A stretch of DNA of 64,000 nt from Auanema rhodensis (GCA_964057225.1 OZ059894.1:7688001-7752000), one strand, 5' to 3'; positions 15,124 through 38,715 are shown, counted from the first letter of the stretch. Numbers and translations: made by a program. Notes: generated by a model from the letters alone, not told the origin.

Positions 15124-16939
15124 TCTAAACTTAAGAAGTATTGTATAGTAACAGAGTTAAGAAAAAGAATATCATATACTCACACTATAATCTAAAGTAG
15201 ATGACAACTAGTGTTATCAGGTTTGGAGGCATAAAGAAGTAATAACAAAATATTTTTTGATGGAAGTTTGTTCTGTAAATGAACTGATTTCGATTTTTAA
15301 TAAGTTTTATCAATAAACACACAGTTCTTAATGGCTATATTTGTAATATTTTAAAGAAACGAAACGAATTAAGTGAAAAAATACTGAAAGTAAGAAGTTA
15401 TCAATTTAAAGTTGAGTTATCTCTATCAAAGGTTTCAGAATATTCATTATGAAAAGTGCATATTGTAGAAGTTTCATTTTTGTATTAAATATGAGATTCT
15501 CATGACAACCATTCTTGAAAATACTCTTCTTATTTGGTGAATGATGAGTATAAATCCATTTTTTTAAGTTTGATATCCAATTTTATTTATTATATACTTT
15601 ACTCATATAGTATAATTGATTAGTCTTGGTTTACTATCCAGTGTTTTAATGGGAAAATCTAACATGGTTTAGTCAATTCTATATTGTTGGATGTATTAAG
15701 TTGTTCAGTGTACGAGAATCGAGACGAAAATTTCAATTTTTCAAACTATGCATATGTGGCATCTGGAAGAATTCATTTTCTTCATGACATGCTGCTGTAT
15801 GACATTCAGTCTTTGCTCACATGACAAGTACCACAAGTCAACCAATAGTTCAGTCTCGATGATATTCATCTTATTCGTCTTACATCTCTTTTAAATTGAC
15901 TTAACAAGGCTGCTACAATGTAATTGATTCTGATTTGAATATGCTTTTTCTTTGAAAATATGAAATTGACGTCGCATTTGGAGGGATGTAAGAAAGTAAC
16001 AATGTAATTGATTCTTTTCCCTTATTTAGTAAAAGGGGTTTACTATATTCTCATTACTTGCACCATATGAATAAAAACTTCAAACTGTTACTAGTTGAAA
16101 GTTTTTTATAAATGGTATTACAAAGTAATGTTTAATTTTTTGTATTGCTTGAACAATAATATTATTCCAAGTTTATGCATTAACTTTTTGACAGAAGAGA
16201 AAGTTTAAACAAAAAAAGGCATGTGTACACGCATGAATATGTTTGGAGGTTTTCTTAAGTCATTCTGTATGTTTCATGTTTTTTTCACGAAAAATCTCTT
16301 CGAAGTACACGGTAGAAACAACCGATCGCTACGCCTTTTAACAATGAAATGAAAAATTTAGCTTGCGCGGCTAGTATTCTAACTTTTTTTGTTTTCAATT
16401 TGTTCATACACCACAACAATTACTTATATATTATAATTTTATTATCAATTATATTTTTTCGTTGATTTAATTTGGTTTTCAATTTTTTTAGCCACATTGC
16501 ATAAAAACCCAGCAAAATTCGTTGTTTTTTGCGTTATCCCCTTTCTTTAGTTTCCTTTCTTTAAAATAAGCATAATTTACTTGTAGTTTATAATTGCTTT
16601 ATATTATATAAATATGTTTTTCTATTTTTGTGATGAAGCTGTATAGGCTACCGCAGCCAACGATAGGAAGTCATGATTGGCTTCTACGGGATTGCCATTA
16701 TGTCAGTGGAACGGCTAACGGATTTACTACGACGGGACCTAACATCTGACGGCAGCAACTCTTTCTATTTGCCTACATTAGCATATTCTAATGAGTGCAC
16801 AAGCACGATTTATCCATTTCTATTTCTCTGTCGGCCATTCTTCTCTTTAGTCTCCCTCTCTTACATAATTCTCTCAAAATCTCTCATACCTTTTGCCTTG
16901 ATTACCAGCCTTCACTTCCTCATCCTGTTAGCACAACAC

Positions 16940-17030
16940 TCTCTATTTCTCTCTCTATCTCTCTCTCTCCCTCTCTCTTTCTCTTGGTCTCTTTCTCTTT
17001 CTCTCTCACCCAATTTCTCTCTCTTTCTCA
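16940..17030. repeat. (CT)n-rich polypyrimidine tract; similar CT/GA tracts at about 6530-6570 and 18555-18630
   Basis: Direct observation; explains the spurious Leu/Ser-rich ORFs here. Confidence 0.85.
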
Positions 17031-20000
17031 ATCTATCGTCTATATATATCTCTTCATGTTCAACCGAATTCCAGCATTTTCCTTCACACATTCTATCCGT
17101 TTTATGCTTCGCACTGCTACGGCCTTGATACAAAAATCACAATTGTATAATCTGAATAGTCTGTCTACCGTCCTAGTTAAAGATGCTCCGAAAGTTTTTT
17201 TGCCTCTTTCAATTTTTAGATCACACAAATCCCGGACAAAAACAATGTGAAAACATCGTCAATTCCATTTAATTTCTATTCCCACATTTTCAACACTTAT
17301 ATAATAGCGCAATACATTCAACTGACTTAAGTATCTTCAATTATGAAGAGTATTCGTCTAGAATAATCGAATATAAAAATACCTCAGCTAACCTTAATAT
17401 TAATAATATTTTTATTCTTTTGTTAATGAAAATCAATAACACTTAAAAAACTTAACTTTTTAGTGTTTAACTTCTGGTTATAGATCTGAAGTTATTAAAT
17501 TCTCCTCACCCATCATTATAATAATCAGCTCACTCTTGGAATACTATGTTGCATCATTGAATTTATACGTTTATGAATTGTTTCCGGTTATATATGGCCT
17601 GCTTTTGATCTATAAGACTATTCATCCAGAAAAAGTGAAGTTTCGATGAGAAAATAGACAGTGATCTTTTTCACTTATGCTTTTGAAATATTTTATTCCC
17701 TCATTCTCTAGCTAATGCCCTATTTAATACGATTGATCTGTGTTTTGGTAATATAGCCATTAGAATCAAATCGTTTCAATTCGTCTTTTGTTAGTCTATT
17801 CTGTAACAATATGCTTTTTTCTCCCTTTTTTCATATTTTCCTTTCATTGTACGTATGAGCGCCCACAACAACGACCACGACACCGACACTATATTCAACT
17901 GAAATATCTCGCTCTTTTCTTCATGTTTTTTGATCCTGAAATATCATCCCATTCTTAAAGTATGATTTTCATAACCGCATTATTCTGCTAGCATTGCTTG
18001 TTTTCTTAAATGTTTTTATGAAGCTTAGATCCTTAAATGTAAGTAAGTGGATACTACTAATCCCATTGTACTAGTCGTACTCTCATCAATTCATCCGTCT
18101 CCCCCTCCCTCACATTCTTTCCATCAACGCCTAATTGCTACCTTCTGAGTCGATTCCCCCTTGAATACTATTCAAGCAGCATATACGTAATGTATACAAG
18201 TCTAAACACCTTTATATATGATATTTATGAATTGAATTAAGCATCTATAAACTTTCTTTGGTATTTCTATGATCTTTGATATTATTTCTAGTCGAAATAT
18301 CATGCTTTGTCTTTTATTAACGTTTTATGAAATGTCTTTATTGTCTGAATTCTCTTATTTGTGTTCATAAATGTTTTTTTTTGTTATAATAATTCATTAT
18401 ATCCGCATAACCCTAAACTATCTATATCATTACTATCAGATCTTCTTCTGTATCATATATCCTTTTGTATCTAATTGACTCTTCATCATCTTCAGAAAGA
18501 GCCGATGAGTGTTCTGATCTTACTCCCACACACGTACACACATATACACACAATTCTCTCTCTCTCTTTCTCTTTCTCTTCCTCTCTTTCTTTATTTCAC
18601 CCTCATACACAATCTTTCTGTTTCTCTCTTTGTATCCATATGGAAACGATATCATTTAATCGATTACATGTAATGTTTGCCTATAGCACATCACAAGCAA
18701 AAAGAGCAATATTTTCATTCCATCTACCTGCTTTCTTTATCGATTTCAATCAATTTACTCAATTTATACTGAGAATAACTTTTCACCCTCGCAACGTTTT
18801 CAAAATAATACTTTTATCTTTCGATATAACAAAGTAAGCACACAATCTCCAATAATCAATGATGGTTGTGACTCATGTCCGAGTTTTTCTCTCATACTTC
18901 ATCTCCCGATAATTTGATGAGGTTTCCATCTCAACTGTTTCGCATGTGGCTAGCCTTCTCTTGCCTTCCGGTTTACACGCCGTTGTTTTACTCTTTCTCG
19001 CTTTTTTAAGGTCATTTTCCACAATGAGCTTCGAACCACAAGTGTTCAAACTTTATTCCAACTTTTCTATTCTTTTAGTTTATTATAAGTTTTCACAATA
19101 TTACTATGTATCTGAATACTTCACTCAAAATATGTGAGACATCACTGGTAAACATTAATCATTTCTATTATCAAGCCTTATTGTTGTCCAAATATGATAA
19201 TAAGACCAATAACGTGGTAGAGAACTTTCTCCCAATTTCATTGTTGTCTAAATACAAAATACGATGAGTAGCAACTATTGGAAAAAGCCTTATCTGAATC
19301 CAGTTTACATTATATTTGCATTAGTCATATGGACACAGTCGGCATAGCCGTGAATCATGCCACGAGCAAGTCCCTTTGCTTCATAAGCATCATCCGTCCA
19401 TCAACATCTTCGTCAACTCAGTTTCATTTCACGCATTTAGTTATAATTCTCTAAAGCTTAAATATTAGTTCGATAGCTTAACCTGTTGTCCTGACTTCAA
19501 ACGTGCCATGTAGAAGCAAGAGATTTTGTTTACTTCCAGCTTGCAAGAATGTTTTTTCCATATTTTGAACTATCTCACTAATTCTGACCAGCCAATGATC
19601 AAATCCAAATAAAGCTTTAAATTTAAATATAAGATCGTCTAAGGGTATCCACATGTTCGTATACTTGTGTTATTTTTTTAGCGAAATGTCAACAAAGAGG
19701 TGAGAATTCTTCAGTTTTTAAATGCTGTAGCTTTCTAGTAGTGTATAAATCTTGAAAATGCCTAAACAACTGATAATGTCTTACTTATATTATTATTCAT
19801 TGAAGTTTATTATAATTTTATTAGTTTCTTGACTATTTTCATACATTTAATGTTTTACTTTTTTCTATTTCATAAACTTCTTTGCTCTGTATTTGTTTAC
19901 TTTCTCTCAGGAAGACCGGATATTCCGGTTCATCTTTTGTACGTGAAGCTTGCTGATATACTGTTCCGCCTCTTCAGCTCTTCCTTCTCTAAGAAAATTT

Positions 20001-20222
20001 CCAACAAACTCTAAAGTTTTGTTTTAATACTCTTCTTTGTTTCGTATATACTGTCTTCGAATAAAGGCAATATTTCTAGTATTCACAAGCTTTTTATCTT
20101 TTGAAGTTCAGTCCTGGATTCAAAATGCTTAATATTTTTTTTTTCGTGCTCAGTGTTCTAAATATTATTTTTTAAAAAAAACTCCTTGAAATATGATTTG
20201 CAATTTCTTTTCAGCATCTGCT

Positions 20223-20430
20223 ATGTGGTCAGCATGGTTAATTGTGATTTATACTATAACTTGCCTACTTGTGCTAATTATCTTAGCCGTAGCCGCCTGG
20301 TTCGTCAGAGTTGACATTCGAAGGACAAAAGTTATCAATGGTACGTTTGCATATATTATTTTTATACATAGTGGTGGAAATTCTTATTTTAGAAATGGTA
20401 GTGAACCATAAGCAAGCTACTCAAGTTTAA
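20223..20430 (+). CDS. 51-aa single-pass membrane micropeptide MWSAWLIVIYTITCLLVLIILAVAAWFVRVDIRRTKVINEMVVNHKQATQV
   Basis: TTTTCAG acceptor 8 nt before the ATG; exon 20223-20340, intron GTACGT..TTTTAG (20341-20392), exon 20393-20430; ~23-aa hydrophobic helix followed by basic residues; AATAAA at 20745-20750. Confidence 0.7.
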
Positions 20431-21898
20431 AACTTAAAACTGATTTCTCTAATAGTCTAGTCTGTGATTTTTCAAATTCTCACGCCGTGTATGCTCTGCT
20501 GCAGAACGTCATCATCATCAGTTATATTTCAAATTTTCATACTAATTAACTCACAGTCTAGTATATATTCATCTAATTCAGTTTCTGTGATATTCGGTAT
20601 TCTTGTTATTTGATTATACATATTATAAGTGTTTCTACTTAATCCACAAAAAACTTTGTTACCAGAAGTCTTGCTTGTTGTCTATATTGCCTTGTACATT
20701 TCAAAAATGTGTTTATGTTTTTCTGTTTAAATAGAGTAAATTCAAATAAAACTTTTAGAATATTTATATTTTGGTTTACTTTCACATGATATAGGGAGCT
20801 AATGAGTTAGATGGACTCTTCTTATCAAATGCTAGATAAAAGGCCTTACGATTAATGAAACGATAGTGTAAGGATTTTCGTATTTTATACGAATTTTATA
20901 AATTATACTTTGTCAACATCGATGTTATCCAGACTCATTATACATTGGGAAGATGTTTTCTTTTTTGTTTGATTAGTCAAATTTCATTAATTAAATATCC
21001 TAAAATCTGTATAATAACCAGCTTGGCTTTGCGAATTGGACGTATTGAAGAAGTATATGTGCAAAGCTGGCAGCAATGCCATATCGATCTTAAGTATTGA
21101 AGTTACTCAGTCATGTATATTACTACTTCATATTCACCTATATGCTTTCAAACAAATAATATTTCTATGGATTTATTCCTTTAATATGTATTTATATAAG
21201 AATGTTATTTTAAATTCAGTGAATAATACAATGATTAATGTTTTTTTAATTGTTTCAAACACTCAATCTTATTTTGATTATTGAGCGATCCACAAAGGCA
21301 TCAGTTTCTATGATATGTATATTCAGCATAAACATAGCATATTCAGGCTACTCTTTCCTAGATTTTTTTGGCTTTGCAGAGGTTTAGCTAACCAATTTTC
21401 AATATACTATTCAACGAAATATCCATCATAACTATTATATGTTCCTTATCAGTTAAAAGCAAAAAAATGAGAAAAAAAAGTCTCTTTTTAGTAGTCATTT
21501 GTAGTTATTGTGTGATATCTTTGATTTTTGGATAGTTTCTTTTAGTTTCCATTATTGAGACCAATTTTGTAATTTTATTTGGTCTGCGTGAACGTTGAGA
21601 TTATTTTTTATAGTTTTCTATTTATTTTTTAAACTGAATTTCCTGCTTACTATTTGTCAAATAAGACAATATCAAAATCAAACATTCCTTGCATAGACTT
21701 CTTTTCTTTTTTTTGAACCAAAAAATGTTTGTGGCCTTTACACTTGATCTAATCTAATCATACCAATAAAGTGCAAGCCTTCTTTGTTTGATAATAAAGA
21801 GTTAGTAGCTCTAGCGTCTTCTTGTGCGATTAGTCTGCTTAAGCACCTACTTTCTCTCTCAATACGATCCTTGTATTCATTTTCCAGTTAAGGTAACT

Positions 21899-23959
21899 AT
21901 GACAGATAGACTCGTCAAAGAATATTCAATCACTAAAGAATGGGTGGAGAAAAGCCTTCAGCAATATCACCAAACCAAATCTCTTCCAACTATTTCCGAG
22001 GTTTGATACCAAGTTTTTTTTGAGGTTATCATATTTGGCATTCAGATTCATGTACTAGGTGATAGTGTGTTAGGCTACATGTCAGCCATAGTACGAGTTC
22101 ATATCAAATGGGCGCCAGAAGAGTCGGCAACTTTACCTCCAACAGTCATAGCCAAGGTATATTTATTTGTTTATAAATCTGTGAAACAATGGGTAGAATA
22201 TAACATTTAAATCGTATAGTATTACAAGCATTTTGAAACAAATGGTTTTAATAAGTAAAACCTTTAATTATAAAAGCAACAAATCTTTAATTATTACATG
22301 ATATTTGCAGTTTAATTTTGATTTCATGACCTCAAAAGCTCAAGAATTATGTTTTTTTGTATATTATTGTTTTTATCAAGCTAGTTTGTTGAGTACAGCG
22401 AAATAGAATTTGATAAGATTTGGTCATAAACTATTAAGTTGATAAGAATACTTCTGATTTTTTAGATATTTATATCAGCTTAAAACTTTTTTTTTTCATA
22501 ATTTCATGCATTCAAAACTCTTATCTTCAGATTCCAAGCCCACATAAGGCAGAAGAAGCTTGGAAGAAATGTGGGCACAAAGAGGAGAATGAAGAAGGAA
22601 AGTTTGAAGAAGATCCTATTCATGAATTTATGCACGAAAATGAAGTGAAATCTTATACAATATTTCAAGAAAGTAAGCTCTATTTTAAAATTCGATTGAT
22701 TTTAGTGATTACGGTAGATTTGATAATGATCCCAGTTCTAAGAGGCCCTTTATCTAATTAGCATATTTCATTTATGATTTTTATTTTTAAAGCTATTTGT
22801 GTGTAGATCGGTTGCATTTTCTTACCTTTCTTCTTTCAACTAATTTTTCTTATTTCCAGCTACGCATTCTATGAAAATTCCAAAGCTTTATGGATACCAA
22901 TCTTATGCAAGTGGATCACCTGTACTTCTTCTTGAAGATATCGCTGATTCCATTACTGTGGACTTAGTTGAAGGATTCAACGAGCAACAAGTATATTATT
23001 TTTTTCAATTGCGATTCATATTCATTTCTAATTTCTAGGTTTATGCTATCATGGATGAACAAATTGCTTTGCACAAATGGTCAAAAACCACTGATAAATG
23101 GAGAGATTTATTCAAAACGAACGATGTGAGAAATTTTACCATTATCTGTAGTATTTTTCAAATACCTTTTAGAATGATTCTGAATACAATGCGGTATTCT
23201 GTAAAACTATATTGGTCATGCATCAACAGTTAAAACAAGAACATCCTGAGCTAACCGACTGTTTAGATATATTAGTTAGAAATTATATGCATGATATAAA
23301 TTGGTTCTCTGCATCACTCAAAGAGGCACAAGAAGGTTAGAAAATTCATTATTTTCTTTTTTCATTATAAAATTTTTCGAATATTTGAAATGATATATAT
23401 ATATATATATATATGTATGTATTAGAATAAAGTTGAATTACTTTAGACCCTCAGTCCGTATTCAACCATGGTGATCTCTGGGCCCCACAGATCTTATGGC
23501 AAGGTAACACTATCACTGGAATTGTTGATTGGGCTTTGTGTCATGCTGGTAGTTGGGTACAAACTATAGCTTCACACATATTTTAAATTAAAGTGAATTA
23601 CTTCTAGACAGGGGATATTTTGAGAATCCTCTCAACTTGCTGTACGTCAGAAATGCGTAGAAAACTGGAAAAACCATTGCTAGCGTATTATGCTGAAAAA
23701 ATGAATTTGTCTTTTGACGATGTACTTGTAAGAAGATTTTTATAAAATTTCTTCATTAACTTTAAATATTTTCTTCCAGAAAAACTATTATAAAACTTTG
23801 CCACAAGTATGCGCTATGACAACGTTTGCTGTAGCCATGTGGGCCAACTCCCCCGTTCTTAGAAGGGGAAAGCCAGATGATGAAGCTAGAGTTAAAGAAA
23901 TGAACAAGAGATTGAAAGATGTAATAGAAGACACTGCCAAATACTTTAACTGGATTTAA
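21899..23959 (+). CDS. Choline/ecdysteroid-kinase-like (CHK / DUF1679-type) small-molecule phosphotransferase, copy 1
   Basis: LGYMSAIVRV (P-loop-like), TVIAKIP, HENEVKSY, PVLLLEDI, catalytic VFNHGDLWAPQILW, IVDWALCHAG, GDILRIL; GT-AG introns; ends YFNWI*. Confidence 0.88.
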
Positions 23960-24734
23960 ATTGTGAATTTAACTGTGATACAAACATAGAAGGTGTAAAA
24001 AGGTTTTTTCATTTTAATATTAGAAATGTAATTTTATTGAGGAATAAATTTATATCTAATTAGTTGAATAATACAATTCCTAGGTGTTCCCTTCCCCTCC
24101 CTTGAAAAATAATATCAGCTGTCATTGTTAAAACCTAATAATAAACAGTGGAATTTTGAAAGCGAGATATTTTGTATCATTTTATATATAAGAAATATAT
24201 TATCATACCCGTTTTGAGGTTTAAACCAACTCATAGTGTTTCTCGTTCTATATTTGTCAGGCTTCAAAGAACTGTTAGCATTTTGATATTTGGTATAGGC
24301 GGGCGGTGTAAAGGGCGAATGTCAAACTATTGCATAAATACCATCAGTTGTTATTATTTTATCAAAGGTTTTATTATATAAAATTTTTTAAACTACATTT
24401 ACTGATATCTTTTCAAATATTCCGAAATAATGTTTTACTTTTTGTATGATGGCAATTTTATCCATTTTTGTGTGACTTTATATTAATCTTGTTTTGTACA
24501 TAAATATGTCCGTTGGACGGTGCAACGTAGAGGTGACTAATACAAATTTAACGTATTAGTTGATTTGATAATCCTCTTTATTTTTACTTTATATATAAAT
24601 TTTGGTCGTTCCATAACAATCGTTCTCATTTATCAGATGTGCCTTTGAGAAATAACCTCAACACATAATTTTATACTTATCATCACATATCTCTCCAATA
24701 CGATCCTTGCATTCATTTTCCAGTTAAGGTAACT

Positions 24735-26764
24735 ATGACAGATAGACTCGTCAAAGAATATTCAATCACTAAAGAATGGGTGGAGAAAAGCCTTCAGCAA
24801 TATCACCAAACCAAATCTCTTCCAACTATTTCCGAGGTTTGATACCAAGTTTTTTTTGAGGTTATCATATTTGGCATTCAGATTCATGTACTAGGTGATA
24901 GTGTGTTAGGCTACATGTCAGCCATAGTACGAGTTCATATCAAATGGGCGCCAGAAGAGTCGGCAACTTTACCTCCAACAGTCATAGCCAAGGTATATTT
25001 ATTTGTTTATAAATCTGTGAAACAATGGGTAGAATATAACATTTAAATCGTATAGTATTACAAGCATTTTGAAACAAATGGTTTTAATAAGTAAAACCTT
25101 TAATTATAAAAGCAACAAATCTTTAATTATTACATGATATTTGCAGTTTAATTTTGATTTCATGACCTCAAAAGCTCAAGAATTATGTTTTTTTGTATAT
25201 TATTGTTTTTATCAAGCTAGTTTGTTGAGTACAGCGAAATAGAATTTGATAAGATTTGGTCATAAACTATTAAGTTGATAAGAATACTTCTGATTTTTTA
25301 GATATTTATATCAGCTTAAAACTTTTTTTTTTCATAATTTCATGCATTCAAAAGTCATATGTTCAGATTCCGAACCCACATACGGCAGAAGAAGCTTGGA
25401 AGAAATTTGAACATGAGGAAGAAAACCTAGAAGGAAAATTTGAAGAAAATCAAATAAATAAACTTATGCACGAAAATGAAGTGAAATCTTATACAATATT
25501 TCAAGAAAGTAAGCTCTATTTTAAAATTCGATTGATTTTAGTGATTACGGTAGATTTGATAATGATCCCAGTTCTAAGAGGCCCTTTATCTAATTAGCAT
25601 ATTTCATTTATGATTTTTATTTTTAAAGCTATTTGTGTGTTGATCGGTTGCATTTTCTTACCTTTCTTCTTTCAACTAATTTTTCTTATTTCCAGCTACG
25701 CATTCTATGAAAATTCCAAAGCTTTATGGATACCAATCTTATGCAAGTGGATCACCTGTACTTCTTCTTGAAGATATCGCTGATTCCATTACTGTGGACT
25801 TAGTTGAAGGATTCAACGAGCAACAAGTATATTATTTTTTTCAATTGCGATTCATATTCATTTCTAATTTCTAGGTTTATGCTATCATGGATGAACAAAT
25901 TGCTTTGCACAAATGGTCAAAAACCACTGATAAATGGAGAGATTTATTCAAAACGAACGATGTGAGAAATGTTATTGTATTTTATCATATTTATTCCTTT
26001 TAAGAATATGTGTGAACTGAATCAACAGTTCTGTAAAACTATATTGGTCATGCATCAACAGTTAAAACAAGAACATCCTGAGCTAACCGACTGTTTAGAT
26101 ATATTAGTTAGAAATTATATGCATGATATAAATTGGTTCTCTGCATCACTCAAAGAGGCACAAGAAGGTTAGAAAATTCATTATTTTCTTTTTTCATTAT
26201 AAAATTTTTCGAATATTTGAAATGTATTAGAATAAAGTTGAATTACTTTAGACCCTCAGTCCGTATTCAACCATGGTGATCTCTGGGCCCCACAGATCTT
26301 ATGGCAAGGTAACACTATCACTGGAATTGTTGATTGGGCTTTGTGTCATGCTGGTAATTGGGTACAAACTATAGCTTCACACATATTTTAAATTAAAGTG
26401 AATTACTTCTAGACAGGGGATATTTTGAGAATCCTCTCAACTTGCTGTACGTCAGAAATGCGTAGAAAACTGGAAAAACCATTGCTAGCGTATTATGCTG
26501 AAAAAATGAATTTGTCTTTTGAAGATGTACTTGTAAGAAGATTTTTATAAAATTTCTTCATTAACTTTAAATATTTTCTTCCAGAAAAACTATTATAAAA
26601 CTTTGCCACAAGTATGCGCTATGACAACGTTCGCTGTAGCCATGTGGGCCAACTCCCCCGTTCTTAGAAGGGGAAAGCCAGATGATGAAGCTAGAGTTAA
26701 AGAAATGAACAAGAGATTGAAAGATGTAATAGAAGACACTGCCAAATACTTTAACTGGATTTAA
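24735..26764 (+). CDS. CHK / DUF1679-type small-molecule phosphotransferase, copy 2 (tandem duplicate)
   Basis: Same exon structure and motifs as copy 1, intact frame, TAA at 26762-26764. Confidence 0.88.
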
Positions 26765-27244
26765 ATTGTGAATTTAACTGTGATACAAACATAGAAGGTG
26801 TAAAAAGGTTTTTTCATTTTAATATTAGAAATGTAATTTTATTGATGAATAAATTTATATCTAATTAGTTGAATAATACAATTCCTAGGTGTTCCCCTAC
26901 CCCATTAATAACAGCAGATTTCACTAAATCCGTTGGAAATCAATGAAAAATCTAAGAGAATAATTTCTCGATATCTTTTTTACACTACCTTGGAGCACAA
27001 AAATATTTAAAAATTTGATATTTTCATGTTTACATATACTTCATCCTGCTATTTTAATACTGAAACCCTCTGATCAAAGTTGAAAAAGACACTGCAAACG
27101 AAAAAAAACCCTTAATGACGTAGTTGCAATATTCAATTTTGGAACGAACGAAAATTGTGGGTTACGGCACGAACACTCTGTATAGCAATTGTACTGTTCA
27201 ACTAGAGTAATCTTCATGTTATATGACAGACATTTATTTGTCTG

Positions 27245-27497
27245 CCAAGCCCCGCCCACCTGCGAATCAAACAAAACCGCCTAGCGCACGCAGTGACGTC
27301 ACTCCCTCGTTGCGTATATATACTCAGTTTGTCGCCATTTCTTCGTCGTGTGGGTGAGTGTATCTTTATAGTTTTTGGGTAGCTGCTTGATATGTATCTG
27401 AAGAAATTAATAATTAAATCAAACAAATGAAATTTTAAATGGAGGTTAAAATGAATGCTTGTTAAAAAACGAGAAAACATGTTATCTTCTTTCTAGA
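27245..27497 (+). promoter_or_regulatory. Promoter and probable non-coding first exon/5'UTR intron of the TFIIA gene
   Basis: GC box GCCCCGCCC, perfect palindrome AGTGACGTCACT (CRE core TGACGTCA 27294-27301), TATATATA, TCAGTT initiator-like sequence, then GTGAGT donor (27354) and TTCTAG acceptor (27497) upstream of the ATG. Confidence 0.5.
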
Positions 27498-27549
27498 CTG
27501 AAAAATCGCTAACTGCCGCCTCCTGATTCTCGCTTAGCATCATTTAAAA

Positions 27550-29030
27550 ATGGCTCAACAAAGTCAGGGCCACGCTATTGTATGTTTCACGTTTTTTAAT
27601 TTTGTTTTTAATTGATGTAATTTTAGGCTGATATATACAGAGGTGTTATTTCTGATGTGATTAACCAAGTGAAGGAAGCATTCCTTGATGAAAATGTCGA
27701 TATTGATGTTTTGAATCAGCTCCGAAAGGTTTAAAAATTTTTTATTTTGTTTAATTGATCAAAATTGTTGTTAGGAGTGGGAAGACAAAGTTAATTCGAG
27801 TGGCTGCGTTGATATGGATACCAGACATCCTTCACATACGCAGCATGTTCCACCCGCGGCTATGAGGAGTATGCCTTCAAATCCTGTACCGAACAGAATG
27901 GCCATGCCTCATGCAAGAATACAACCACATATGGTGGGTTACAAGTTTATTATCTTTCAACATTTTTTTTCTAGCAGAATGTTCCTGCACAAATTCCTCA
28001 ACATATCGAGGTTCAAAATCAACCTCGTCAAATGACTGTGGGGCAGATAGCTCAACAGCAACATCAACAGCAACAACAGCAGCAACAACAGCAGCTACAA
28101 CAACAACAAAATATTGGACAAATTCAGGTCCAGGTTAGTTCTTGATCACCTCCTTTATGAGATGATTGTAATTTTTTCAGCCTAATCAAATTGGTAATGT
28201 TCCTTTCCCCGCTGGTCAGGTACGCATGGTTCAAACTATTGGTCAACCTGGCCAGTTTATTATACCAAACCAAAGTGTCATGTTTATTCAGAATAGTGGT
28301 ATATTTGTAACTTTAAATATACTATGTATGCTCTCTGATTAGGTCAACAAATACCAATTGCTATGGGACCCACTAATATGGTTCAACAGCGTGTTCAATT
28401 GAATCCCGGACAAGTATTGGGACAACAAATTCATCAAGTCGATGGAAACGCTGATGTTGACGTGAGCAATGTAATGAAGATATCATTTTTATTGACTAAT
28501 TTTTATTTTTTCAGGAAGAAGCTACGTCCTCTTCATCTGGTATCAAAAAGCACCAGAAAGTGAAAAAGACACGTATGCACTTTTTTGTGCCTTTTTTATT
28601 CAGTTTTAAAATTTTCAGGCAAAGAAGCTGAAATGATTGCTAGACAGCTTGGTCTTTTGCAACTTGATGGAGGTGGAGGGGGAATGTCTGATTCTTCTAG
28701 TGAGGAAGAAGATGAAGACCCACTTAGTTCGATTGCTAACATCGGTGATGGGCATATCGACGATGGGGAGACTGTTAGTTTGCGCTATTTAAAAAAAATA
28801 GAAACTACTTCATTTAGATTACTGAGGAAGATCCTCTTAATTCCGGAGATGATCAGAGTGATGATGAAGATTTGGAAACCTTATTTGATGCTGAAAATGT
28901 TATCATGTGTCAATTTGAGAAGGTTCACAGAGCTCGATCTAAATGGAAGTTCCAGCTCAAGGATGGAATTATGCACATTGATAATCGTGACTACTGTTTC
29001 CAAAAGTGTACTGGAGAAGCCGAATGGTGA
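27550..29030 (+). CDS. pqn-51: Transcription factor IIA large subunit (alpha/beta precursor; GTF2A1/TOA1 orthologue)
   Basis: N-terminal IYRGVISDVINQVKEAFLDENVDIDVLNQLRKEWEDK, Q-rich linker, QLDG cleavage site, acidic region, C-terminal EEDPLNSGDD...NVIMCQFEKVHRARSKWKFQLKDGIMHIDNRDYCFQKCTGEAEW*. Confidence 0.95.
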
Positions 29031-29449
29031 AACTGTTCTGAGATTTATTTTTTGCAAATTTTGATTGTTTTCTCCCACTGCGACTTGGTTTAGATTCTGA
29101 GAATTCCTCTGCTTCCTGCTTCTACTTGTCAGTTATTCACTTACTTGGCATAGATTCGATTCTCATCTCTGTGATTAACGTTTTTTTTTGTTCTGATTAT
29201 ATCTGTCAGTGTTTTTTTTAATTGTGACCTTAGCTCGTTTTTTCTTTCATCATGTTTATGAATTACCAGTCGGTGTATTTCTCTGTGTTATGATTAATAT
29301 AGAAGATTGTTGCGTTCTATTACATGTTATGATAGAGTGGGATTAGATAAATATTTATTTTGTTCATATTTTCTTATTTAATTAGGTATAACTTCCAAGA
29401 TTTATTAGGAGAATAATAATGCAATTTTCGAATAATAGCAATCAGATAA

Positions 29450-30577
29450 ATGTCCAGCACATGCTTAGTTTTGAAGAAAGCGAATGTCAGCTATCCCTAT
29501 GTTCAAATTTTAGTTTCTAAAATTAATGAAGACTTGTATCATGTATTTGTGCGAACACGGTTTGGTTATTTCTAATTTTAAGCTCATAAAACTATTCAGG
29601 AATGAAACCTTATGTTTGAACTTGAGTTCTGTTATTATTCATTCACTAATTCGAGAAGCTTGTAAAGCCTATTGGAGAGACATAATTCCGGAATTCCGAA
29701 TTAAGAACAAATATCAAAGGTGTCTGCATTATACTTTCTCTCTCACGCTGTTCTTTAAGTTTACATTCATCAGTTTCTCATTCGGTAACGCCTAGAATCG
29801 TTGAGATTACTTCTGATGATGAACTGGAGGATTGCTCCTCATCAACAAATCAGCCTTTCGTTCAAGTAATAATAGTTTTTTTATTGTTTTTTTTAATCGT
29901 ATGCCTTAAGTTCCCTAGAAATAGGATAATTGCATTGCCTTTCAATACTGATAATAAAGGTTCATCAAAAAGAAGAAAGAAAGTAACGGTTGCGTCGTTA
30001 TTAGGACAAGATGATTATTATGCTTGCAAGGTCTATATATCATTCTTCTACTTAAATGCAAAAAAAATAATTTCAGACATGCTTTAAATCGTTTCAGAGA
30101 AAATATAATCTTCAACGTCATGAATTTGGATGTAAAGTCAATACTATTTTTTTCTTTTGTCCTATATGTTCGTGTACATATAAAAGAGCAAATCATTTAG
30201 CTGTAAGTTTATATATAAAATATATATCACTCATATTCCATACAATTACATAGGATCATATACGATCACATGAAGGTTTCAAATTTGAATGTAAAATATG
30301 TCTCAACCAATATGGTACGAGAGCAGCACTAACAGTGAGTTTTTCTAGCCCAAATGAAGTTATTAATATACTGATTAGGCTCACATGAAAAAACACAAAA
30401 ACTCTACCAAAGATAAACCATCAACAGATGTAAGAAAAGATGGGAAAAGGAAATCTGCGTCTTACATTGAACCTGCCGCACATGGTATACGAAATTCTGA
30501 ATTGCTGTTGATTATTGGTGAATTTAGAAACTGCTGGTAAAATTAGAATACCTTTGGATTTTGAAGTGCAGATGTGA
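29450..30577 (+). CDS. Small zinc-finger protein (one C2HC plus two C2H2 fingers, basic NLS-like stretch)
   Basis: Spliced frame gives SKRRKK, YACKTCFKSFQRKYNLQRHEFGC, FCPICSCTYKRANHLADHIRSH, FECKICLNQYGTRAALTAHMKKH; ends EVQM*. Confidence 0.82.
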
Positions 30578-30791
30578 ATCAGTATTCAATAAGGTTTGGG
30601 AATCTAATATAAAAGTATTTTTGTCTTTTGAGTTGATGTAACCCTCATTTTTGCTGCCTCAAAATGCTTACGTTTTCATTCCATTGTTACAAGAATACCA
30701 ATGAATAGTTCCTAAGAGACTCCCCTAGCTACGAAATTCCATTATTGGCTTCTTCATGTTTAGAAACCTTCTTCTGCTCTAAATTTTTCAA

Positions 30792-32269
30792 ATGACTTCG
30801 GCTCATAAAATTAGACTCTCGCCAATTTTATATCTTTTATTCTATCTTATTCGTTCTGTGGCTGCGCAGTGCTCATCAAATACCAAACGTAAGAAACATC
30901 ATCACATACAAAAAATTAATTAACATAGTTGTTAAACTGAGTACTACATTTTGTTTCAGTTTTTTAAATGAAGCGGTTGCATCAGTTTTTTATTTTTTAT
31001 TATTACAAAAAATTCATCATTTTCAGCAACCAATGCATTATCTCCGCTAGTACTTTATATGATTGGTGATGAAAGCTATGGTATGGATATAGTAATGCTT
31101 TATTTGTTATTTCTACGTATTCAGGCAATCGTTCTCATATTCTCTCGCCTCATTCGGACTTTGAGTCTTCAGCTGCTTCAGTAAATTTTACAGTTCGATT
31201 TGCTGATCAGCTAGATGCTAAAGCTTTAACAAGTGATACAAATGTTGGATGCTCATGTACAACAAGAGTAATAACAGTTACCAAACTCTCATCCGATTTT
31301 TCTCGGCGTAGGCATCTTTAGGTTGCTATTATTTGAATTACATTTTTTTTATAGTTACAATTAGTCATACAACCGACGTTTTCTTGAATAATTGGATTGA
31401 TGCTGGTTTTCAAGCATCTCCTGATGGCACTTTTTATTGTGTAAAAAATAAAAATGAATGCAAAGCTGATGTCGGCCTCTATCTATATAAAAGCAACACA
31501 TCCGAAGGCAAAATTGGAATACTGTGGACATTTTCAAGAGTTTTGTAATTTAGATTATTACGTGTCAACTGAAAACAAAGGTCCACAGTTTGGTGAAGAA
31601 CCATATAGCCTACATTATCCTCCAAATCGTCCTGATCTTTACGGTATTCCCCTGTGCTACGTTTGGTTAGATACATCGTAAGTTATCAGAGAGCTGATAA
31701 CCTTTCTTTTTGTTTTAAGATTGACAACTACCACGACCACCAAAGCTACAACTACTACGTCTGCTAATGAAGCAGCCATGACTACAGTGTCTGATAAAAA
31801 TGACACTTCAGACGCAACAATACCATCCGAAACAGTATAAGATAATAACTGGTAACTTGATGATATTTTTTATTACAGTTAACTTCTACCAAGAGTAGCG
31901 AAGAGGACCAGACGAGGGATAAAAGTTAGACCAGTTATTGATATGCACTAATATAATTTTTTAGAATGGAAGTCGTCCTGGTGGAAATGGGTGGCTGGTT
32001 TATGTGCTGGATTATTCATGATAGGAATATGTTGCATAGCTGTATGTTTTACCCTAAAACTATCAAATATTTTTTTAATTCGTCAGGTTATCTGTTGCAC
32101 TATGATGTTTATAAGTCCGGCGAGTAAAATCACTCATGTGGTCAAATACTCTGGGGAACCTACGAACTCCCGTGATGTACTACCCCCTCAACCTGTTCAA
32201 GCAGCCGCAACAGGGCAACAGTTACCCGCTAATTTCGTGCCTTTACCACCTGGTTATGTCCCCTCTTGA
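30792..32269 (+). CDS. Type I membrane protein with a DUF5648-like ectodomain, Thr-rich stalk, TM helix and Pro-rich tail
   Basis: Signal peptide ...ILYLLFYLIRSVAA; GTFYCVKNKNECKADVGLYLY...DYYVST...GIPLCYVW resembles nematode DUF5648 repeats; TTTTTTKATTTT stalk; TM WVAGLCAGLFMIGICCIAVICCTMMFI; tail ends PLPPGYVPS*. Requires one GC-AG intron (31508-31553). Confidence 0.78.
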
Positions 32270-32413
32270 TCAATTACAGTAAACGTATATGTACATGAAT
32301 ATTTAAGACTAGCGCCGAAGTTGCAAAGTACAATGTATAAAATTGTTTAAAATGGACATGTAAAGGCATAAAGTGAACTCGTATGATTAGAAGGAGCTCG
32401 CATCCAAAATTGT

Positions 32414-35400
32414 CTATGACGCAACTTGACGAACCGGCGGCCTAAAATGAGCTTAGTTTGCATTGAATAAACTATGTAAAACTTACAGTCCTACTGTTCC
32501 TTCCCGAGGTGGAATTGCTGGAGGAGAGATAGCTGATTGTGTTGGGGGGGGAGGTGCGACTATCTGAGGCACTTGATTGTCTAATGATGCCATAGATACA
32601 TAAGCTGAACTATTTACAGTGCCGATGGTTCTACTTTCCAGTGTAGTAGGTCGCCTTGCTGCACTCCTGTCCTACAAGCTTACAAAAATATAAATAATTA
32701 TTTTTAAATCATACCGGATTGCAATAAATATAATGAGGATTAGTAACAGCTGAATGACTAGAGGCCACAGTAGGCTGAAACAAAAGTAATATTTAGAAAA
32801 ATGATAAACTTAATTCCTACATGCATATAATTGTCATTATTCACAATTCGGTTTACTCCTGGAGGAATCTCGCCACAATCAACATATGGATCTTCATCCT
32901 GACCGGCAGGACGATTAGACGGAGGAACTACAGCAGAAATAGTATACTGAAAAGCCATATGAATCCTTGAGCTGTTCATGCAAAACTCACATATGGAGAA
33001 GGGGCAGGGTAAGTTGGAGGAGACATAGAATGAATATTTGGATCAAGGGTATGTGAGCGAGAACGAATAGAAGAAACGGGTTGAGATATAGGTATATAAT
33101 TGTCATCTGGAAAAATACAGAAATAAATAACCATAAATACTAAACTTACCGCTGTCAAAGCGTATGTTACCTGGTGAAGGAACTGTTTCACTCAAAGAAA
33201 TCTCCCTAGTTTGAACAGGAGCAGGTATTCGCGGTGCAGGCCGCTGAAAAAAAACCATGAGTCAGTATTTAAGATTTCGAACGTAGTCAAGATAGGATCT
33301 TAAGATAACTCACAGTTGGGACTTTAGCGACAGTTCCGCGCGAAAGAGAATTGGAATACTTTTGCCTGTCTTTTTCATTATTTGACACAGAAGATCCATC
33401 GGGACTATACACAACAGTTGAAGATGCGGTCTTGGAACTTGAACTGCTGGCAATATCATCTGAACAATATTACTTGGTAAATAATCAATCAAAATATAGA
33501 TTAAATTGAAACAATCACAAAAACAATCACAACACTAACCATCACCAACTACTTCAACAACGGCAAATTCAGGTTCTGGTCCAGATCCTCCATTTTTCTT
33601 TTTCTTTTTCATAGCATGAGCTCTTTTCAATGTACCATGCCCACCATCAACTCCCAGCAAGTTTAGATGTGGTGTACTACTTGAATGTGCACCTTGAAGC
33701 CTGCCCATGTGAAGACCATTCCGTAAAGTTTTGGAATCTTCCGGTGTTCCGCCTTTTTTCACTCAAACAACACAAATACCAAATAACAAAACAACATTGA
33801 ATGTAAAAAAAATTAAACTTACATATCAGTATATTTTCTGCATTTTTCTTATATGCAACGTTATCAACCACAGACACTAAATGTCTTAGATCTGAAACTA
33901 TCTTATGAAATTACATACAATATTTGTGTGATATACCTCCTTCGGGGCTACCAATTGAACTTTTACTGATCTTCTTTCTAGTTCTCGGTTGTTGAAAGGG
34001 AACTCCAGGTATTTTCTCGTTCTAAAAACAAACAAATTGGTATTTGAGTAATAACTTGGATCAACCTTATCCATAATCGTACTTGCACGGTCAAGATATA
34101 GGATACACAACGCATGCAACTTGCTTTCCAAACTGCATGCCATCTCACTTAATATAATTAAAAATAAGAATTCTAAGAATTCTAAGAACAAGCAGAAACC
34201 TTTTATTTTCATTTTGTCTCACAAATTCTGCTACCACTTGTTGAGCAAGATGGACAGTTCTTTCTTCGTCGATCTAAAATTAGAAACACTTTTGGAAATA
34301 TCAGCATATGCATAAAAATACGGTTATTTTATCGACTTCAAGAGTAGTTCTATAATTACAAAAGCTGTTATATAGAGCTGAAAACTTAGGGCGAGAACAA
34401 GGCATTGCCTGAATTCCAAAATTAAAATATCACAATCAAAATCAAAAAAAGCACCCAACAAGACAGCATTATATTCTTCCACTGATTTGGGCATTCTTCA
34501 TTAACTATCAAAGCAGATCCACCATTTTTTGCAACCTAAGAAAACCATATAAAATAGAAATAAACGGTTTTTTCACAACCTCAAAAGCTCCTGAAAGTTC
34601 TAATCCTTTATAAGGTTCTTCCTTAGTTATTATAGACCATAAAATAACTCCAAAACTCCAAACATCAGATGCTTCAGAAAATTGTCGTTTACTGAAAGCT
34701 TCGGGAGCCAAATATGCTAGAGTACCGGCTTCATTATGACTTTGTCTAAAAATAATGTAATCGTTCAATTCACTTATTAAAATTAAATATACCTTTTTTC
34801 TTCTTCACGAAGAGCTTTGGTAAATCCAAAATCAGTTAATTTCAAGCTAATTTTAGAAAGCGGAGTATTATTACAATCAACACAGCGTGAACTATCCTAG
34901 AAATATAAATAAAAATATTAAAGCATGAAATCAACATATGAACCTCATCCAAATACTGCGAAGTTGTTTCGCAAAGACATATTTTTTCTTTGATCAATAT
35001 ATTAGCGGTTTTTAAATCACGATGAATACAGTGATTTTCAATAACAAATTTCATGGCATTTGATATTTGAATTGCCCATTCAACAAAAACACGAACCGAC
35101 AAAAATGTTTTATTTTTGTTAAGTTCCTGAAGTAACTCTTTCAAGGAACCACCTGAAGGGAATGTTTTAGATTAGATTTATTATACATCGAACCTTCACA
35201 AAGTTCCAATACTAAGCCATGAGGTGAGGATAGAGAAATTCCATAAAGCTCAACAATATTATGATGTTTAAAACGATTAATCATTATAGCTTCCTTTTTT
35301 AGAACTGAACAAAAAATAAGTAAAACCAAGTCAAGCTTCACTTACTTCGAAGATATTCATTACGTGTGGGAGTTTTAAGAGCAGCCTCTTTATTATTATA

Positions 35401-36551
35401 CTTGACTCTGATAACTTTTGCGAAAGCTCCTTGTCCTAGCCATTGATTATTAGCAACTTCTTCTATTTCACTAGAAGCTATTTTTTTCGCTTCGATACCT
35501 AAAGTTAACTTTTAAAATATATCGAGCAAAAAAAATAAGATACCAATAAAATTAACATATTGTGAAGGGAAAAGTCCTTTCATACCAGTTTCTTCCAGTT
35601 CTCCATACCACCAATCTTTTTCACCTCTGATACATTAAAAAATAGGGAGGTAAAACAAATATATCAAACGTTTCAGTGGTGAGAAGCCTTATGGTGTCAC
35701 TGCTATGTAATGTTAATTCGTCTTCCCTCTCTCCTATATATTCATGTAAAACTTCATAAATCTAAAAAAGGAAAAAAATATATATATATGAATAAACCAA
35801 AATACATTTAGAAGTTCTCCATTATTTTGCTTCGCAACTATGCTCGTTATTGCAAGTTCAGAAGATCCTGAAACGTCACATGATGAATGTAAATAATAAT
35901 TAATGAATCAAAACCTTCGCGAGCTGCACCACATGAAAATGAATTTCTAACTAATCTAGCCCCAGGCTTTTCACCTGGATCATGTACAGATAATACATTT
36001 GCTGAAGTAATATCAAGAAATTAAGAACTTTAAACTAAGCATACTAGTAGGAAGGTTTTGATGAGCATCGAGGTTTGAATCAGACTGGTAATTGGAATTC
36101 ATTGCATTTTCATGTCCAATACGATTTAGCACCTTAACAAAATCTTGATTATTGCACTGATAAAGTGAGAATGAAAACATTGAACATGAAAAAATGAAAC
36201 GGAAAAATACACTAATAGTACGAACATACCTCGCAGCTTATACTAGCTTGCTTTCGAAACAACGAACTACAAGTTTTTTTTCGTGATCGTATGGGAACTT
36301 CCTTAAAAAAATTATAAAGTACAAAATAGCTTAATTAAAGTTATTAAAAGCTTGATAAATCTAAAGCAAGTGAACTAGGCTTTAACTGTCTGGCGCTCTC
36401 CGCAAAAGTCACACTCTCTCTTCTTAATTGAATTGAGCATTTTCATCGTAACGGGACTATATTGCAAAGCAGCTTCTCACTTTAAGATGCCTACCTGAAC
36501 GTCCATTTCAGTACCATTTAGTTTTATATATGGAGGCTCTTTATATTTCAT
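32414..36551 (-). CDS. mlk-1: Mixed-lineage kinase (SH3 - kinase - CRIB-like - Pro-rich tail), MAP3K
   Basis: SH3 (VLHEYIGEREDELTL...DWWYGE...GLFPSQYV), GQGAFAKV, AALK, HHNIVELYG, HRDLKTANILIK, TDFG, AGTLAYLAPE, SDVWSFGV, CRIB-like IGSPEGDLRHLVSV. The first exon (ATG 36551 after TTTCAG) is less certain than the rest. Confidence 0.88.
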
Positions 36552-37786
36552 TCTGAAATATCACAATTTTAGACATTAATCATTTTACTCAACGATATTT
36601 CAAATGTAGGCAAGGTATAGTAAAATGCTTATATAAGACAAATGTTTTGATGAAACATTTATTCAGCTGTTAGTCGTACGAGTAGTTTCTTTGGGCACGT
36701 TGTCATTCCAGAATAATTTATCTTTGCAATTACTTTTTTCTTTAGTAATGGCCATTTTTCTCAGTTATGCATGGAATATAGGTTGTGCCACTTGACGGGC
36801 CAGATACTGACAAAACTAAAACGGAAATCGAACAAAGTATGAAGATTATAGGCTTCTTCGTAAAATAAAAGACAAGAATAGAAGAAATGGCTCGGTTGAA
36901 GGTCGTTAGTTGGCCTGCGATAAGTCTATGCCTAAAACAGGTTGTAGACCGAGACGTCTCGCATCGCGGTCAATCTTTCGGTTTTAGAACAGCTGTTCCC
37001 AAGATAAAAAAGAATTTACACTTGAATAGTTGAAGTAGTAACTGTCTTTAAAATTTGATCATATTCTGTACCTATTCATCATTTATTACTAAAAAGACGG
37101 ATGCTGGCAAGTTCTGATCCATATTACTTACGCCGCCGGCTACATTTTTACAGATTATTTAGACATACAAATGCAGTTATTCGCTGGCTAAGAAGGTATA
37201 AGAATTTCTATACTAAAAAAATTATTATAACAGTTTCTTAGACAAATGATATCTTAAAACAATATAACAACAAGTAATATGCTAGAAAAGGATTATATAT
37301 AATTTAATCTGAATTGACATAATACAACACTTGCTGAACAAATAGAATTGCCTCCATCAGTTGAAGTCGATTATGATAATGTATGACATCACTTTTATTT
37401 CTGTTCCTCGTCTATGTTATTTATTCCGATAAAGTACCTCAAGGTCCCAAAATTCAAGTGAAATGAAAATAAAAACAAGAAATCTTACCTAAAAATATTT
37501 TTTTTTAAATGCAACCGGTTGGCAAAACTTTAACTACCGAAATAGCTTTCATGTTTCTTACAATTGGCTACATGATGAAATGAACAGCGTTCGGTCAACG
37601 TTATGAATAAATATGAATAAAGAAAAATAAATGTTTATTAATACAGCTTTTTTAATTAAATAGAATATTTCGAGTATATATACATATATGCAGGAACAAT
37701 AGAATGCTATGAAAAAAATTAAAATAGTTTGCAGTAGCATACTTAAGACGCATTTTTAACTAACCACACATTTTATACGTCTCCTT

Positions 37787-37989
37787 TCATATGTCATACT
37801 GAAATAATATTTTTAATAAATGTTTCAAAGAACAGTCTTGTTTACGTATTCTTCTTGTAGATCTAGTTCATTACTTGTCAAACCACGTAGGTTATATTCG
37901 TGAAAGTACCATGAAAAAGTGCCGAAAATTATCAAAAAGCAACTAGCTAAAGATGCGACAACCACTATGCCAAGAAAATAAACATCCAT
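37787..37989 (-). CDS. 51-aa single-pass membrane micropeptide MDVYFLGIVVVASLASCFLIIFGTFSWYFHEYNLRGLTSNELDLQEEYYDI
   Basis: TTCTCAG acceptor 12 nt before ATG 37989; exon 37846-37989, 47-nt intron GTAAAC..ATTTCAG (37799-37845), exon 37787-37798; long hydrophobic helix; AATAAA on the minus strand at 37634-37639. Absent from the ORF track (under 60 aa). Confidence 0.62.
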
Positions 37990-38715
37990 TAAGTATTGAT
38001 GCTGAGAATGATAATAAGATGTTGGTAATGACTGACACTGTAAACAAGTAAAGTTGATTAATGGAAATATATTTTAAAAATTGTTGTACAAAGTTCAAAT
38101 GGTTAAGTGCTAATAAACATTCTTTTACCAAAAAAAAACCAGCAAGGTTTTCATTTTTCATTGATATTAACCACATGAACAATAAAAAGTGTAGTTGACA
38201 AGGCTGATTTATTCATTTTCATGGAACTTCCATTAGGAAAAACGGACTAATGAGAATAAAATTTTGGGAAAGAGGAAATATAGAATAAAACGTTAATATT
38301 TTTGGTTAATGGAATTGGTGAGTTCTGTGAGTGATCTTGAAATATATGAGTACTTGTAAATACTTAGGCAATTGACTATATGAATACACTATAGTATCTA
38401 CATATCTGATTCCCAAAGGCAAAACGAGGAATCGGAAGAGAACCTACAATGAGTATTAGCTATTCATTCTGATAATCATCAATGAAGCCTTGATCAGATT
38501 TAAAAAAAATTTGTTGGAACATTATATAATTTGTGAATAGAATTAAATTACTGCTCTTCAATATATATTCTACGATTGCAATGTGCTTATAGTGTTCAGT
38601 AATACTTCAATAAATGCTAAGTGGATTGCTGCTCTATCATATTTAAGACAAATGTTGTGTATAAAGACTGCATATATTAAAAAAACTTTATTATTAAAAT
38701 TTTGGTACATATTTT

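Follow-up and report, generated by a model that had tools for sequence, protein, structure and literature searches.

A probable conserved membrane micropeptide and a likely chance reading frame at one Auanema rhodensis locus

We analyzed a 64,000-nucleotide (nt) stretch of DNA from the nematode Auanema rhodensis (GCA_964057225.1 OZ059894.1:7688001-7752000), hereafter the window, with positions counted from its first letter. The original prediction placed in it two spliced, single-pass micropeptides of 51 amino acids (aa), peptides A and B, about 17 kb apart, and proposed that they are old paralogues because they share an ungapped motif. We consider it probable that peptide A is a real, conserved membrane micropeptide, that peptide B is an unrelated and likely chance open reading frame (ORF), and that the two form no family. 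The window is about 31% GC and shows short introns of nematode type with TTTCAG acceptors. For both peptides, the predicted ORFs, GT/AG introns, upstream TCAG/CATC (a slash within a motif marks the splice junction), and downstream AATAAA are present in the sequence as claimed. A scan of the whole window against Rfam returned no family at gathering score; hence, neither locus is a known non-coding RNA.

The peptide A locus comprises the following features:

Positions 20208 to 20214, plus strand: TTTTCAG acceptor, 8 nt 5' of the peptide A ATG
Positions 20223 to 20340, plus strand: exon 1, codons 1-39 and base 1 of codon 40
Positions 20341 to 20392, plus strand: intron of 52 nt, phase 1, GT..AG, donor G/GTACGT
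Positions 20393 to 20430, plus strand: exon 2, bases 2-3 of codon 40, codons 41-51, and the stop codon
Positions 20745 to 20750, plus strand: candidate poly(A) signal AATAAA, about 315 nt 3' of the stop codon

Exon 1 encodes an invariant N-terminal transmembrane (TM) helix and a basic juxtamembrane stretch (20223-20339 translates as MWSAW...KVIN). Exon 2 translates as (E)MVVNHKQATQV followed by a stop codon, and the end of this tail is a conserved A-T-x-V. The TTTTCAG immediately upstream could be a spliced leader (SL) trans-splice site or an acceptor within the 5' untranslated region. AATAAA occurs in the window about once per 520 nt per strand and, taken alone, is weak evidence for polyadenylation. 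A further AATAAA lies at 20061-20066 on the plus strand, about 150 nt 5' of the peptide A acceptor, after an 82-codon frame that ends at 20011-20014. A TTTCTCTCAG acceptor at 19910 precedes this frame. Such spacing is typical where two genes of a nematode operon meet, but the 82-codon frame has no Pfam match and the C. nassatus copy of peptide A lacks an annotated gene within 10 kb.

Database queries were single exons or unspliced ORFs, and the joined 51-aa peptides were used for local statistics alone. A word search with the unspliced 62-aa ORF of peptide A matched six proteins with single-sequence E-values of 6e-11 to 7e-9, originating from Trichostrongylus, Oesophagostomum, Cylicocyclus, Necator, Ostertagia, and one Logan contig. 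Searching with a peptide A profile gave E-values of 2e-31 to 8e-20 for the same six proteins and recovered no others, and a scan of the JGI metagenomes with this profile found no match. Further 51-aa entries, from Haemonchus contortus and Ancylostoma caninum, came from looking up the protein clusters. Orthologue similarity starts precisely at the proposed methionine of peptide A, and the differing N-terminal extensions in some orthologue models look like annotation noise. No Caenorhabditis relative was found in the word-based search, which covered annotated proteomes.

Models of 51 aa are available for Cylicocyclus nassatus (CAJ0589400.1; UniRef A0AA36DLN7_CYLNA), Haemonchus contortus (XGW03402.1), and Ancylostoma caninum (RCN40438.1). 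Longer or partial models represent the peptide in Necator (RB195_016388, Necator americanus), Oesophagostomum (OESDEN_16495, Oesophagostomum dentatum), Trichostrongylus, and Ostertagia, and the Logan contig carrying it is GC-rich. With these models in three and four strongylid genomes respectively, all of them hypothetical proteins, the expectation that length-filtered annotation would miss such a gene is only loosely borne out. Neither peptide A nor its strongylid orthologues have a Pfam family or a protein name, and a literature search with the N-terminal string of peptide A returned no paper containing it. What is new here is the window's orthologue of a nematode protein that was already predicted but is uncharacterized, lacking a name, a Pfam family, and a paper. 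The 90%-identity cluster of a 51-aa peptide also holds a 981-aa member, which raised the idea of a fusion. We rejected this idea: the long protein is a bacterial AAA_16/TPR/LuxR-type regulator with no similarity to peptide A, and its presence in a nematode peptide cluster is a clustering artefact.

Gene structure was compared at four genomic loci: the window, C. nassatus, Necator americanus (CM062682.1), and the GC-rich Logan contig. At all four, exon 1 ends after nt 118 at a G/GT donor, the phase-1 intron falls after codon 39 at the identical position, and exon 2 completes exactly 51 codons. The intron itself varies in length, from 51 nt in C. nassatus and 52 nt in the window to 75 nt in Necator and 217 nt in the Logan contig. 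Exon 1 of peptide A has 72-74% identity to the orthologous exon 1 of C. nassatus, the Logan contig, and Necator, and the complete peptide has 65-67% identity to strongylid orthologues across its full 51 residues. Between C. nassatus and Necator, the nonsynonymous and synonymous substitution rates (dN/dS) are 0.026/1.40, a ratio of about 0.02. Comparisons of the window with every other locus gave saturated dS and dN of 0.25-0.31. Within the first 16 codons, 10-12 codons differ in DNA while the encoded residues are identical.

Across eight sequences, 25 of the 51 positions are invariant: residues 1-16 (MWSAWLIVIYTITCLL), I20, F27, R29, D31, R34, E40, A48, T49, and V51. Peptide A matches the MWSAWLIVIYTITCLL block at 16 of 16 positions and carries F27, R29, D31, R34, E40, and the A-T-x-V end, which reads ATQV, ATDV, ATVV, or ATAV within the family. 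Invariance of the TM half extends from hookworms, Haemonchus, and cyathostomins to at least two nematodes that are more distant. The open frame of peptide A scores 84.4 bits against the family hidden Markov model (HMM), a value that is partly circular because its own exon 1 is in the alignment; the single-sequence matches, with E about 1e-10, are independent of it. Relative to the strongylid orthologues, the window copy is the most divergent except for the Logan contig. It has LII in place of IGI in the helix, N39 in place of S39, and EMVVNHKQ in the tail where theirs read EKYVDTSK. This divergence implies that the window species lies outside Strongylida.

Because the ORF, its length, and its intron position are conserved, and because purifying selection is strong, the claim that peptide A is a real spliced micropeptide of 51 aa with a single TM pass stands. 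Judged by comparative sequence evidence, it is a two-exon gene, orthologous to an uncharacterized strongylid-wide protein that evolves under strong purifying selection.

When 10 kb on either side of peptide A in C. nassatus and Necator were compared with the window by tblastx, only peptide A itself was common. In Necator, a gene of the SID-1 RNA-channel family lies about 5 kb 3' of the peptide A orthologue (20465-25359 of our locus L003, from CM062682.1). No SID-1-like sequence was found in the window by tblastx, and the window has kinase-like duplicates instead; therefore, the neighborhood of peptide A is not conserved.

The second predicted micropeptide lies on the opposite strand:

Positions 37787 to 37989, minus strand: peptide B ORF, 48 codons, an optional intron, then YDI and the stop codon

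In the spliced model, exon 1 (37989-37846) encodes 48 aa ending in EEY and exon 2 (37798-37787) encodes YDI before the stop codon. The putative intron between them (37845-37799) is 47 nt long, runs from GT to AG (GTAAAC...ATTTCAG), and is in phase 0 after codon 48. Read without splicing, the frame continues for six codons to a stop at 37825, yielding a peptide of 54 aa that ends in KTVL. It follows that the description of both peptides as 51 aa long is sound for peptide A and depends on the chosen model for peptide B, whose reading frame stays open either way and so provides no test of the splice. A TTCTCAG acceptor lies 12 nt 5' of the ATG, the base at -3 is T, and an AATAAA at 37639-37634 follows the stop by about 150 nt. 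The maximal 19-residue hydropathy of the peptide is 2.64.

Peptides A and B do resemble one another in outline. Each has an N-terminal TM helix followed by a charged tail of about 22 residues, they are similar in size, each has an acceptor just 5' of its ATG, and they align without gaps at a one-residue offset with 9 identities in 50 positions. These features would fit anciently diverged paralogues of one micropeptide family, both expressed. However, the alignment exists without rising above chance. Its best local BLOSUM62 segment scores 29, and when the TM part and the tail were each shuffled on their own in the two peptides, P was 0.15 for the score and 0.055 for identities, values that precede any correction for the free choice of pair and offset in the original prediction. 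When exon 1 of peptide A was searched against the window with tblastn, about 19 unrelated places scored above the peptide B locus (E = 8), which ranked about 20th.

Profile comparisons were equally null. Aligning the peptide A alignment to peptide B with hhalign gave a probability of 0.27% over 12 columns, contrary to the predicted kinship. The A-family HMM scored peptide B at 0.5 bits, a score equalled or exceeded by 33% of 2000 architecture-preserving shuffles, and 21 of the 91 TM-like open frames in the window scored at least as high. Peptide B matches only 5 of the 25 invariant positions, three of which are aliphatic TM residues, and at the one-residue offset it matches the MWSAWLIVIYTITCLL block at 2 of 16. 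It keeps R34 and E40 but lacks the N-terminal signature, F27, R29, D31, and the ATxV end, and terminates in YYDI. The intron positions differ, as the original prediction had acknowledged, with phase 1 after codon 39 in peptide A and phase 0 after codon 48 in peptide B.

The motif that suggested a family also dissolves within peptide A's own orthologues. One of them has F for W26, every strongylid has S for N39, position 41 carries K or N, and IGI or LAI stands in place of LII. So diverged a paralogue would be unexpected for a family that is nearly unchanged across all strongylids, and no relatives of peptide B were found in our searches. The upstream TCAG/CATC is indeed common to both loci, but TCAGCATC occurs four times in the window, and the C. 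nassatus orthologue of peptide A reads TTTCAG/ATG in place of TCAG/CATC. Altogether, the evidence matches the outcome that the original prediction itself had named as refuting a family, and we regard common descent of the two peptides as extremely unlikely. The shared motif is not significant and appears to be a chance resemblance between two hydrophobic segments, each followed by charged residues.

If peptide B is unrelated to peptide A, it could still be a gene in its own right: a lineage-specific (orphan) single-pass micropeptide, expressed either under a promoter of its own or within an operon as a downstream gene. The consensus-like TTCTCAG acceptor before its ATG, the 47-nt GT..AG intron of typical nematode size, the AATAAA after its stop, and its high hydropathy all agree with this possibility. 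Conservation does not. A word search of 5.8 billion clustered proteins with exon 1 found no homologue, phmmer against 1.84 billion representatives returned nothing at E ≤ 1e-3, JGI metagenome contigs held no match, and an exact look-up of the unspliced ORF found it not on record. The C. nassatus and Necator loci (10 kb on either side of peptide A) likewise contained no match resembling peptide B. Hence, an open frame that is conserved in related species, as the original prediction anticipated for both peptides, was found for peptide A and not for peptide B in protein and metagenome searches.

We asked how often chance alone would supply such an ORF. The window contains 110 ATG-initiated ORFs of 45-90 aa, of which 16 are TM-like. 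The chance probability of YYYCAG within 30 nt upstream is 0.046 and that of AATAAA within 400 nt downstream is 0.49, such that about 0.36 TM-like ORFs with both signals are expected per window and one, peptide B, is observed. In other words, every few windows of AT-rich nematode DNA should yield about one chance TM-like ORF flanked by signals that resemble those for splicing and polyadenylation. A neighboring ORF on the same strand (37558-37740) is as TM-like as peptide B and illustrates what AT-rich DNA yields unaided. The T at -3 of the ATG also speaks against a gene, and the intron alters only the last 3-6 residues, leaving nothing by which to test it.

Several observations weigh against dismissing peptide B. 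No other TM-like ORF in the window combines an upstream acceptor with a downstream AATAAA, and second-order Markov simulations gave no TM-like ORF with an acceptor and a poly(A) signal. Counting the 47-nt intron as well lowers the joint chance expectation to below 0.1, by rough estimate. Furthermore, short peptides often go unpredicted, the genomes searched included no close relative, and the window's own peptides A and B are absent from the protein collections searched, all of which make the blank results for peptide B weaker than database size suggests. With these points taken into account, an orphan gene seems unlikely but deserves more credit than kinship with peptide A. Our preferred interpretation is that peptide B is an intergenic ORF, unsupported as a gene, whose hydrophobic stretch and flanking signals are such as chance would yield in AT/T-rich nematode DNA.

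Peptide B sits in a spacer of about 2.4 kb between two genes on its own strand, one encoding an ShKT array and the other an SH3-like stretch with a protein kinase:

Positions 38716 to 38718, minus strand: TAA stop codon of the ShKT-array gene, with an AATAAA within about 30 nt and the peptide B ATG about 730 nt further on
Positions 34508 to 35780 (within 34300-36100), minus strand: SH3-like and protein-kinase gene downstream of peptide B, with PF07714/PF00069 matches on two exons

Sharing a strand with both neighbors, peptide B might be an exon of one of them, either anchoring the ShKT protein in the membrane by its C-terminus or forming the first exon of the kinase. Its frame remains open for 28 codons 5' of the ATG, across two phase-0 acceptors, as such an exon would permit. 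On the upstream side, a TAA closes the ShKT ORF and is followed by an AATAAA after about 30 nt; therefore, peptide B lies outside the reading frame of this gene. Of the donors late in the ShKT gene, only one is strong; it is in phase 1 and would lead into another frame of the peptide B exon, which stops after about 19 codons. On the downstream side, an AATAAA separates peptide B from the kinase gene. By eye, the SH3-like stretch of that gene reads YEVLHEY...IRGEKDWWYGEL...PSQYVNFI, and the kinase carries the TKL-type motifs HRDLKTANILI and DVWSFGVILWS. This order, with the SH3-like stretch before the kinase domain, resembles the architecture of mixed-lineage kinases, and kinases of this type are cytoplasmic. 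This cytoplasmic architecture makes peptide B an unlikely first exon. In sum, we judge it very unlikely that peptide B belongs to either neighbor, and continue to regard it as an intergenic ORF.

The end of the ShKT-array gene has a peculiarity of its own. A strong donor, G/GTAAGA, lies 9 nt before the TAA (38716-38735, minus strand), and splicing from it to a further exon might bypass the annotated-looking end of the frame. One phase-compatible path leads to an acceptor at about 38040 and into a 79-aa open frame (37943-38182).

Elsewhere in the window, the strands are strongly asymmetric at positions 16000-20000 (GC skew -0.25, AT skew -0.17). Low-complexity CT-rich runs of some length also occur there and give rise to spurious Ser/Leu-rich ORFs of 150 aa (16673-17250). 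More generally, open frames of at least 75 codons in the window are visibly contaminated with antisense and chance frames. Several hydrophobic exons at 12238-13366 on the minus strand look, by eye, like a membrane protein of the acyltransferase-3 / nose-resistant-to-fluoxetine type.

The failure of the family claim saves follow-up on peptide B and on a shared motif that does not exist, and interest in the locus rests entirely on peptide A. Its hydrophobic run extends from residue 2 to about residue 28 and is followed by RVDIRRTK. According to the positive-inside rule, the position of RVDIRRTK after the helix argues for a cytosolic C-terminal tail. Peptide A would then insert with a near-zero extracytoplasmic (outside or lumenal) N-terminus, a TM helix of about 26 residues (2-28), and a cytoplasmic tail of 23 residues. 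Of the orientations available to it, we consider one with an extracytoplasmic N-terminus and a cytosolic tail most likely.

A hydrophobic stretch that begins at residue 2 might instead be a cleavable signal peptide, in which case the product would be a secreted peptide of about 23-25 residues. Small residues before W26 (AVAA in the window; AVG or AIG in strongylids) offer a possible cleavage site, and a basic pair (RR) follows it. Yet the pattern of conservation is the reverse of that in signal peptides, as the hydrophobic part is invariant (16/16) and the supposed mature peptide is variable. The run of about 26 hydrophobic residues has the length of a TM helix and not that of a signal-peptide h-region, there is no positively charged n-region, and the RR is QR in strongylids. 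We therefore find secretion improbable and favor a peptide that remains in the membrane.

For a membrane-resident peptide A, two features point to a possible mode of action. Polar and aromatic residues (W2, S3, W5, Y10, T11, T13, and C14) abound in the invariant TM half. Because this half is both invariant and studded with such residues, the helix may make a specific helix-helix contact with a larger partner membrane protein. At the other end, the C-terminal T-x-V-COOH, with T49 and V51 invariant in eight sequences, fits the class I PDZ-ligand consensus X-[S/T]-X-hydrophobic-COOH. Going by this consensus, the terminus could anchor peptide A on a PDZ scaffold. We infer both the partner contact and the PDZ binding. 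Combining them, we tentatively suggest that peptide A may define an uncharacterized family of rhabditine micropeptides in which the helix would act as an obligatory subunit or regulator and the T-x-V end would tie the complex to a PDZ scaffold. Should its absence from Caenorhabditis be real, peptide A would be a membrane component enriched in parasite lineages. Finding its partner would make a small and tractable project for parasitic-nematode biology.

How does peptide A compare with known small membrane proteins? By language-model similarity, its nearest ESM-Atlas clusters are TMEM52, stannin, and SMIM3 (cosine 0.81-0.86), which are likewise small proteins with an N-terminal TM helix. These scores all fall short of 0.9, which shuffled proteins themselves frequently attain, and of the 10 best family-bearing matches just 1 shares the family or clan of the best one. 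The likeness is generic single-pass similarity, not kinship. For peptide B, the closest candidate was NCE101 (PF11654), a single-pass, 53-aa non-classical export protein of nearly the same size. We rejected it, as one of four queries reached 14.5 bits against a cut-off of 24 (E = 0.03) over the 15 residues IIFGTFSWYFHEYNL; the NCE101 family is fungal.

Membership in the better-known families of small pump and channel subunits was rejected for both peptides. Neither has a Pfam match to the regulins (PF04272 / PF05366) at E ≤ 10, and the TM helix is N-terminal in both. FXYD (PF02038) also gave no Pfam match at E ≤ 10, and neither peptide contains an FXYD string or an ectodomain. KCNE proteins (ISK_Channel, PF02060) are about 100-130 aa long with a glycosylated ectodomain; neither peptide has a Pfam match to this family at E ≤ 10, and both, at 51 aa, have 1-5 residues ahead of the TM helix.

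The comparison is more informative in terms of principle and layout. Regulins, comprising phospholamban, sarcolipin, and Drosophila sarcolamban, are SERCA regulators of at most 60 aa in which a highly conserved TM helix binds a larger membrane protein, and peptide A is comparable to them in principle. However, regulins are tail-anchored, with a C-terminal TM helix and a cytosolic N-terminus, whereas peptide A has its TM helix at the extreme N-terminus and probably a cytosolic C-terminal tail. This layout is instead that of FXYD and KCNE/MiRP, single-pass small subunits of type I/III that have a cytoplasmic C-terminal tail and modulate pumps or channels, although these carry 20-50 extracellular residues and peptide A is without a real ectodomain. 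Where a micropeptide helix is invariant, it is usually the sign of a tight partnership within the membrane, as between regulins and SERCA or between FXYD and the Na/K-ATPase. By analogy, peptide A may work like the regulins and FXYD proteins while belonging to neither family.

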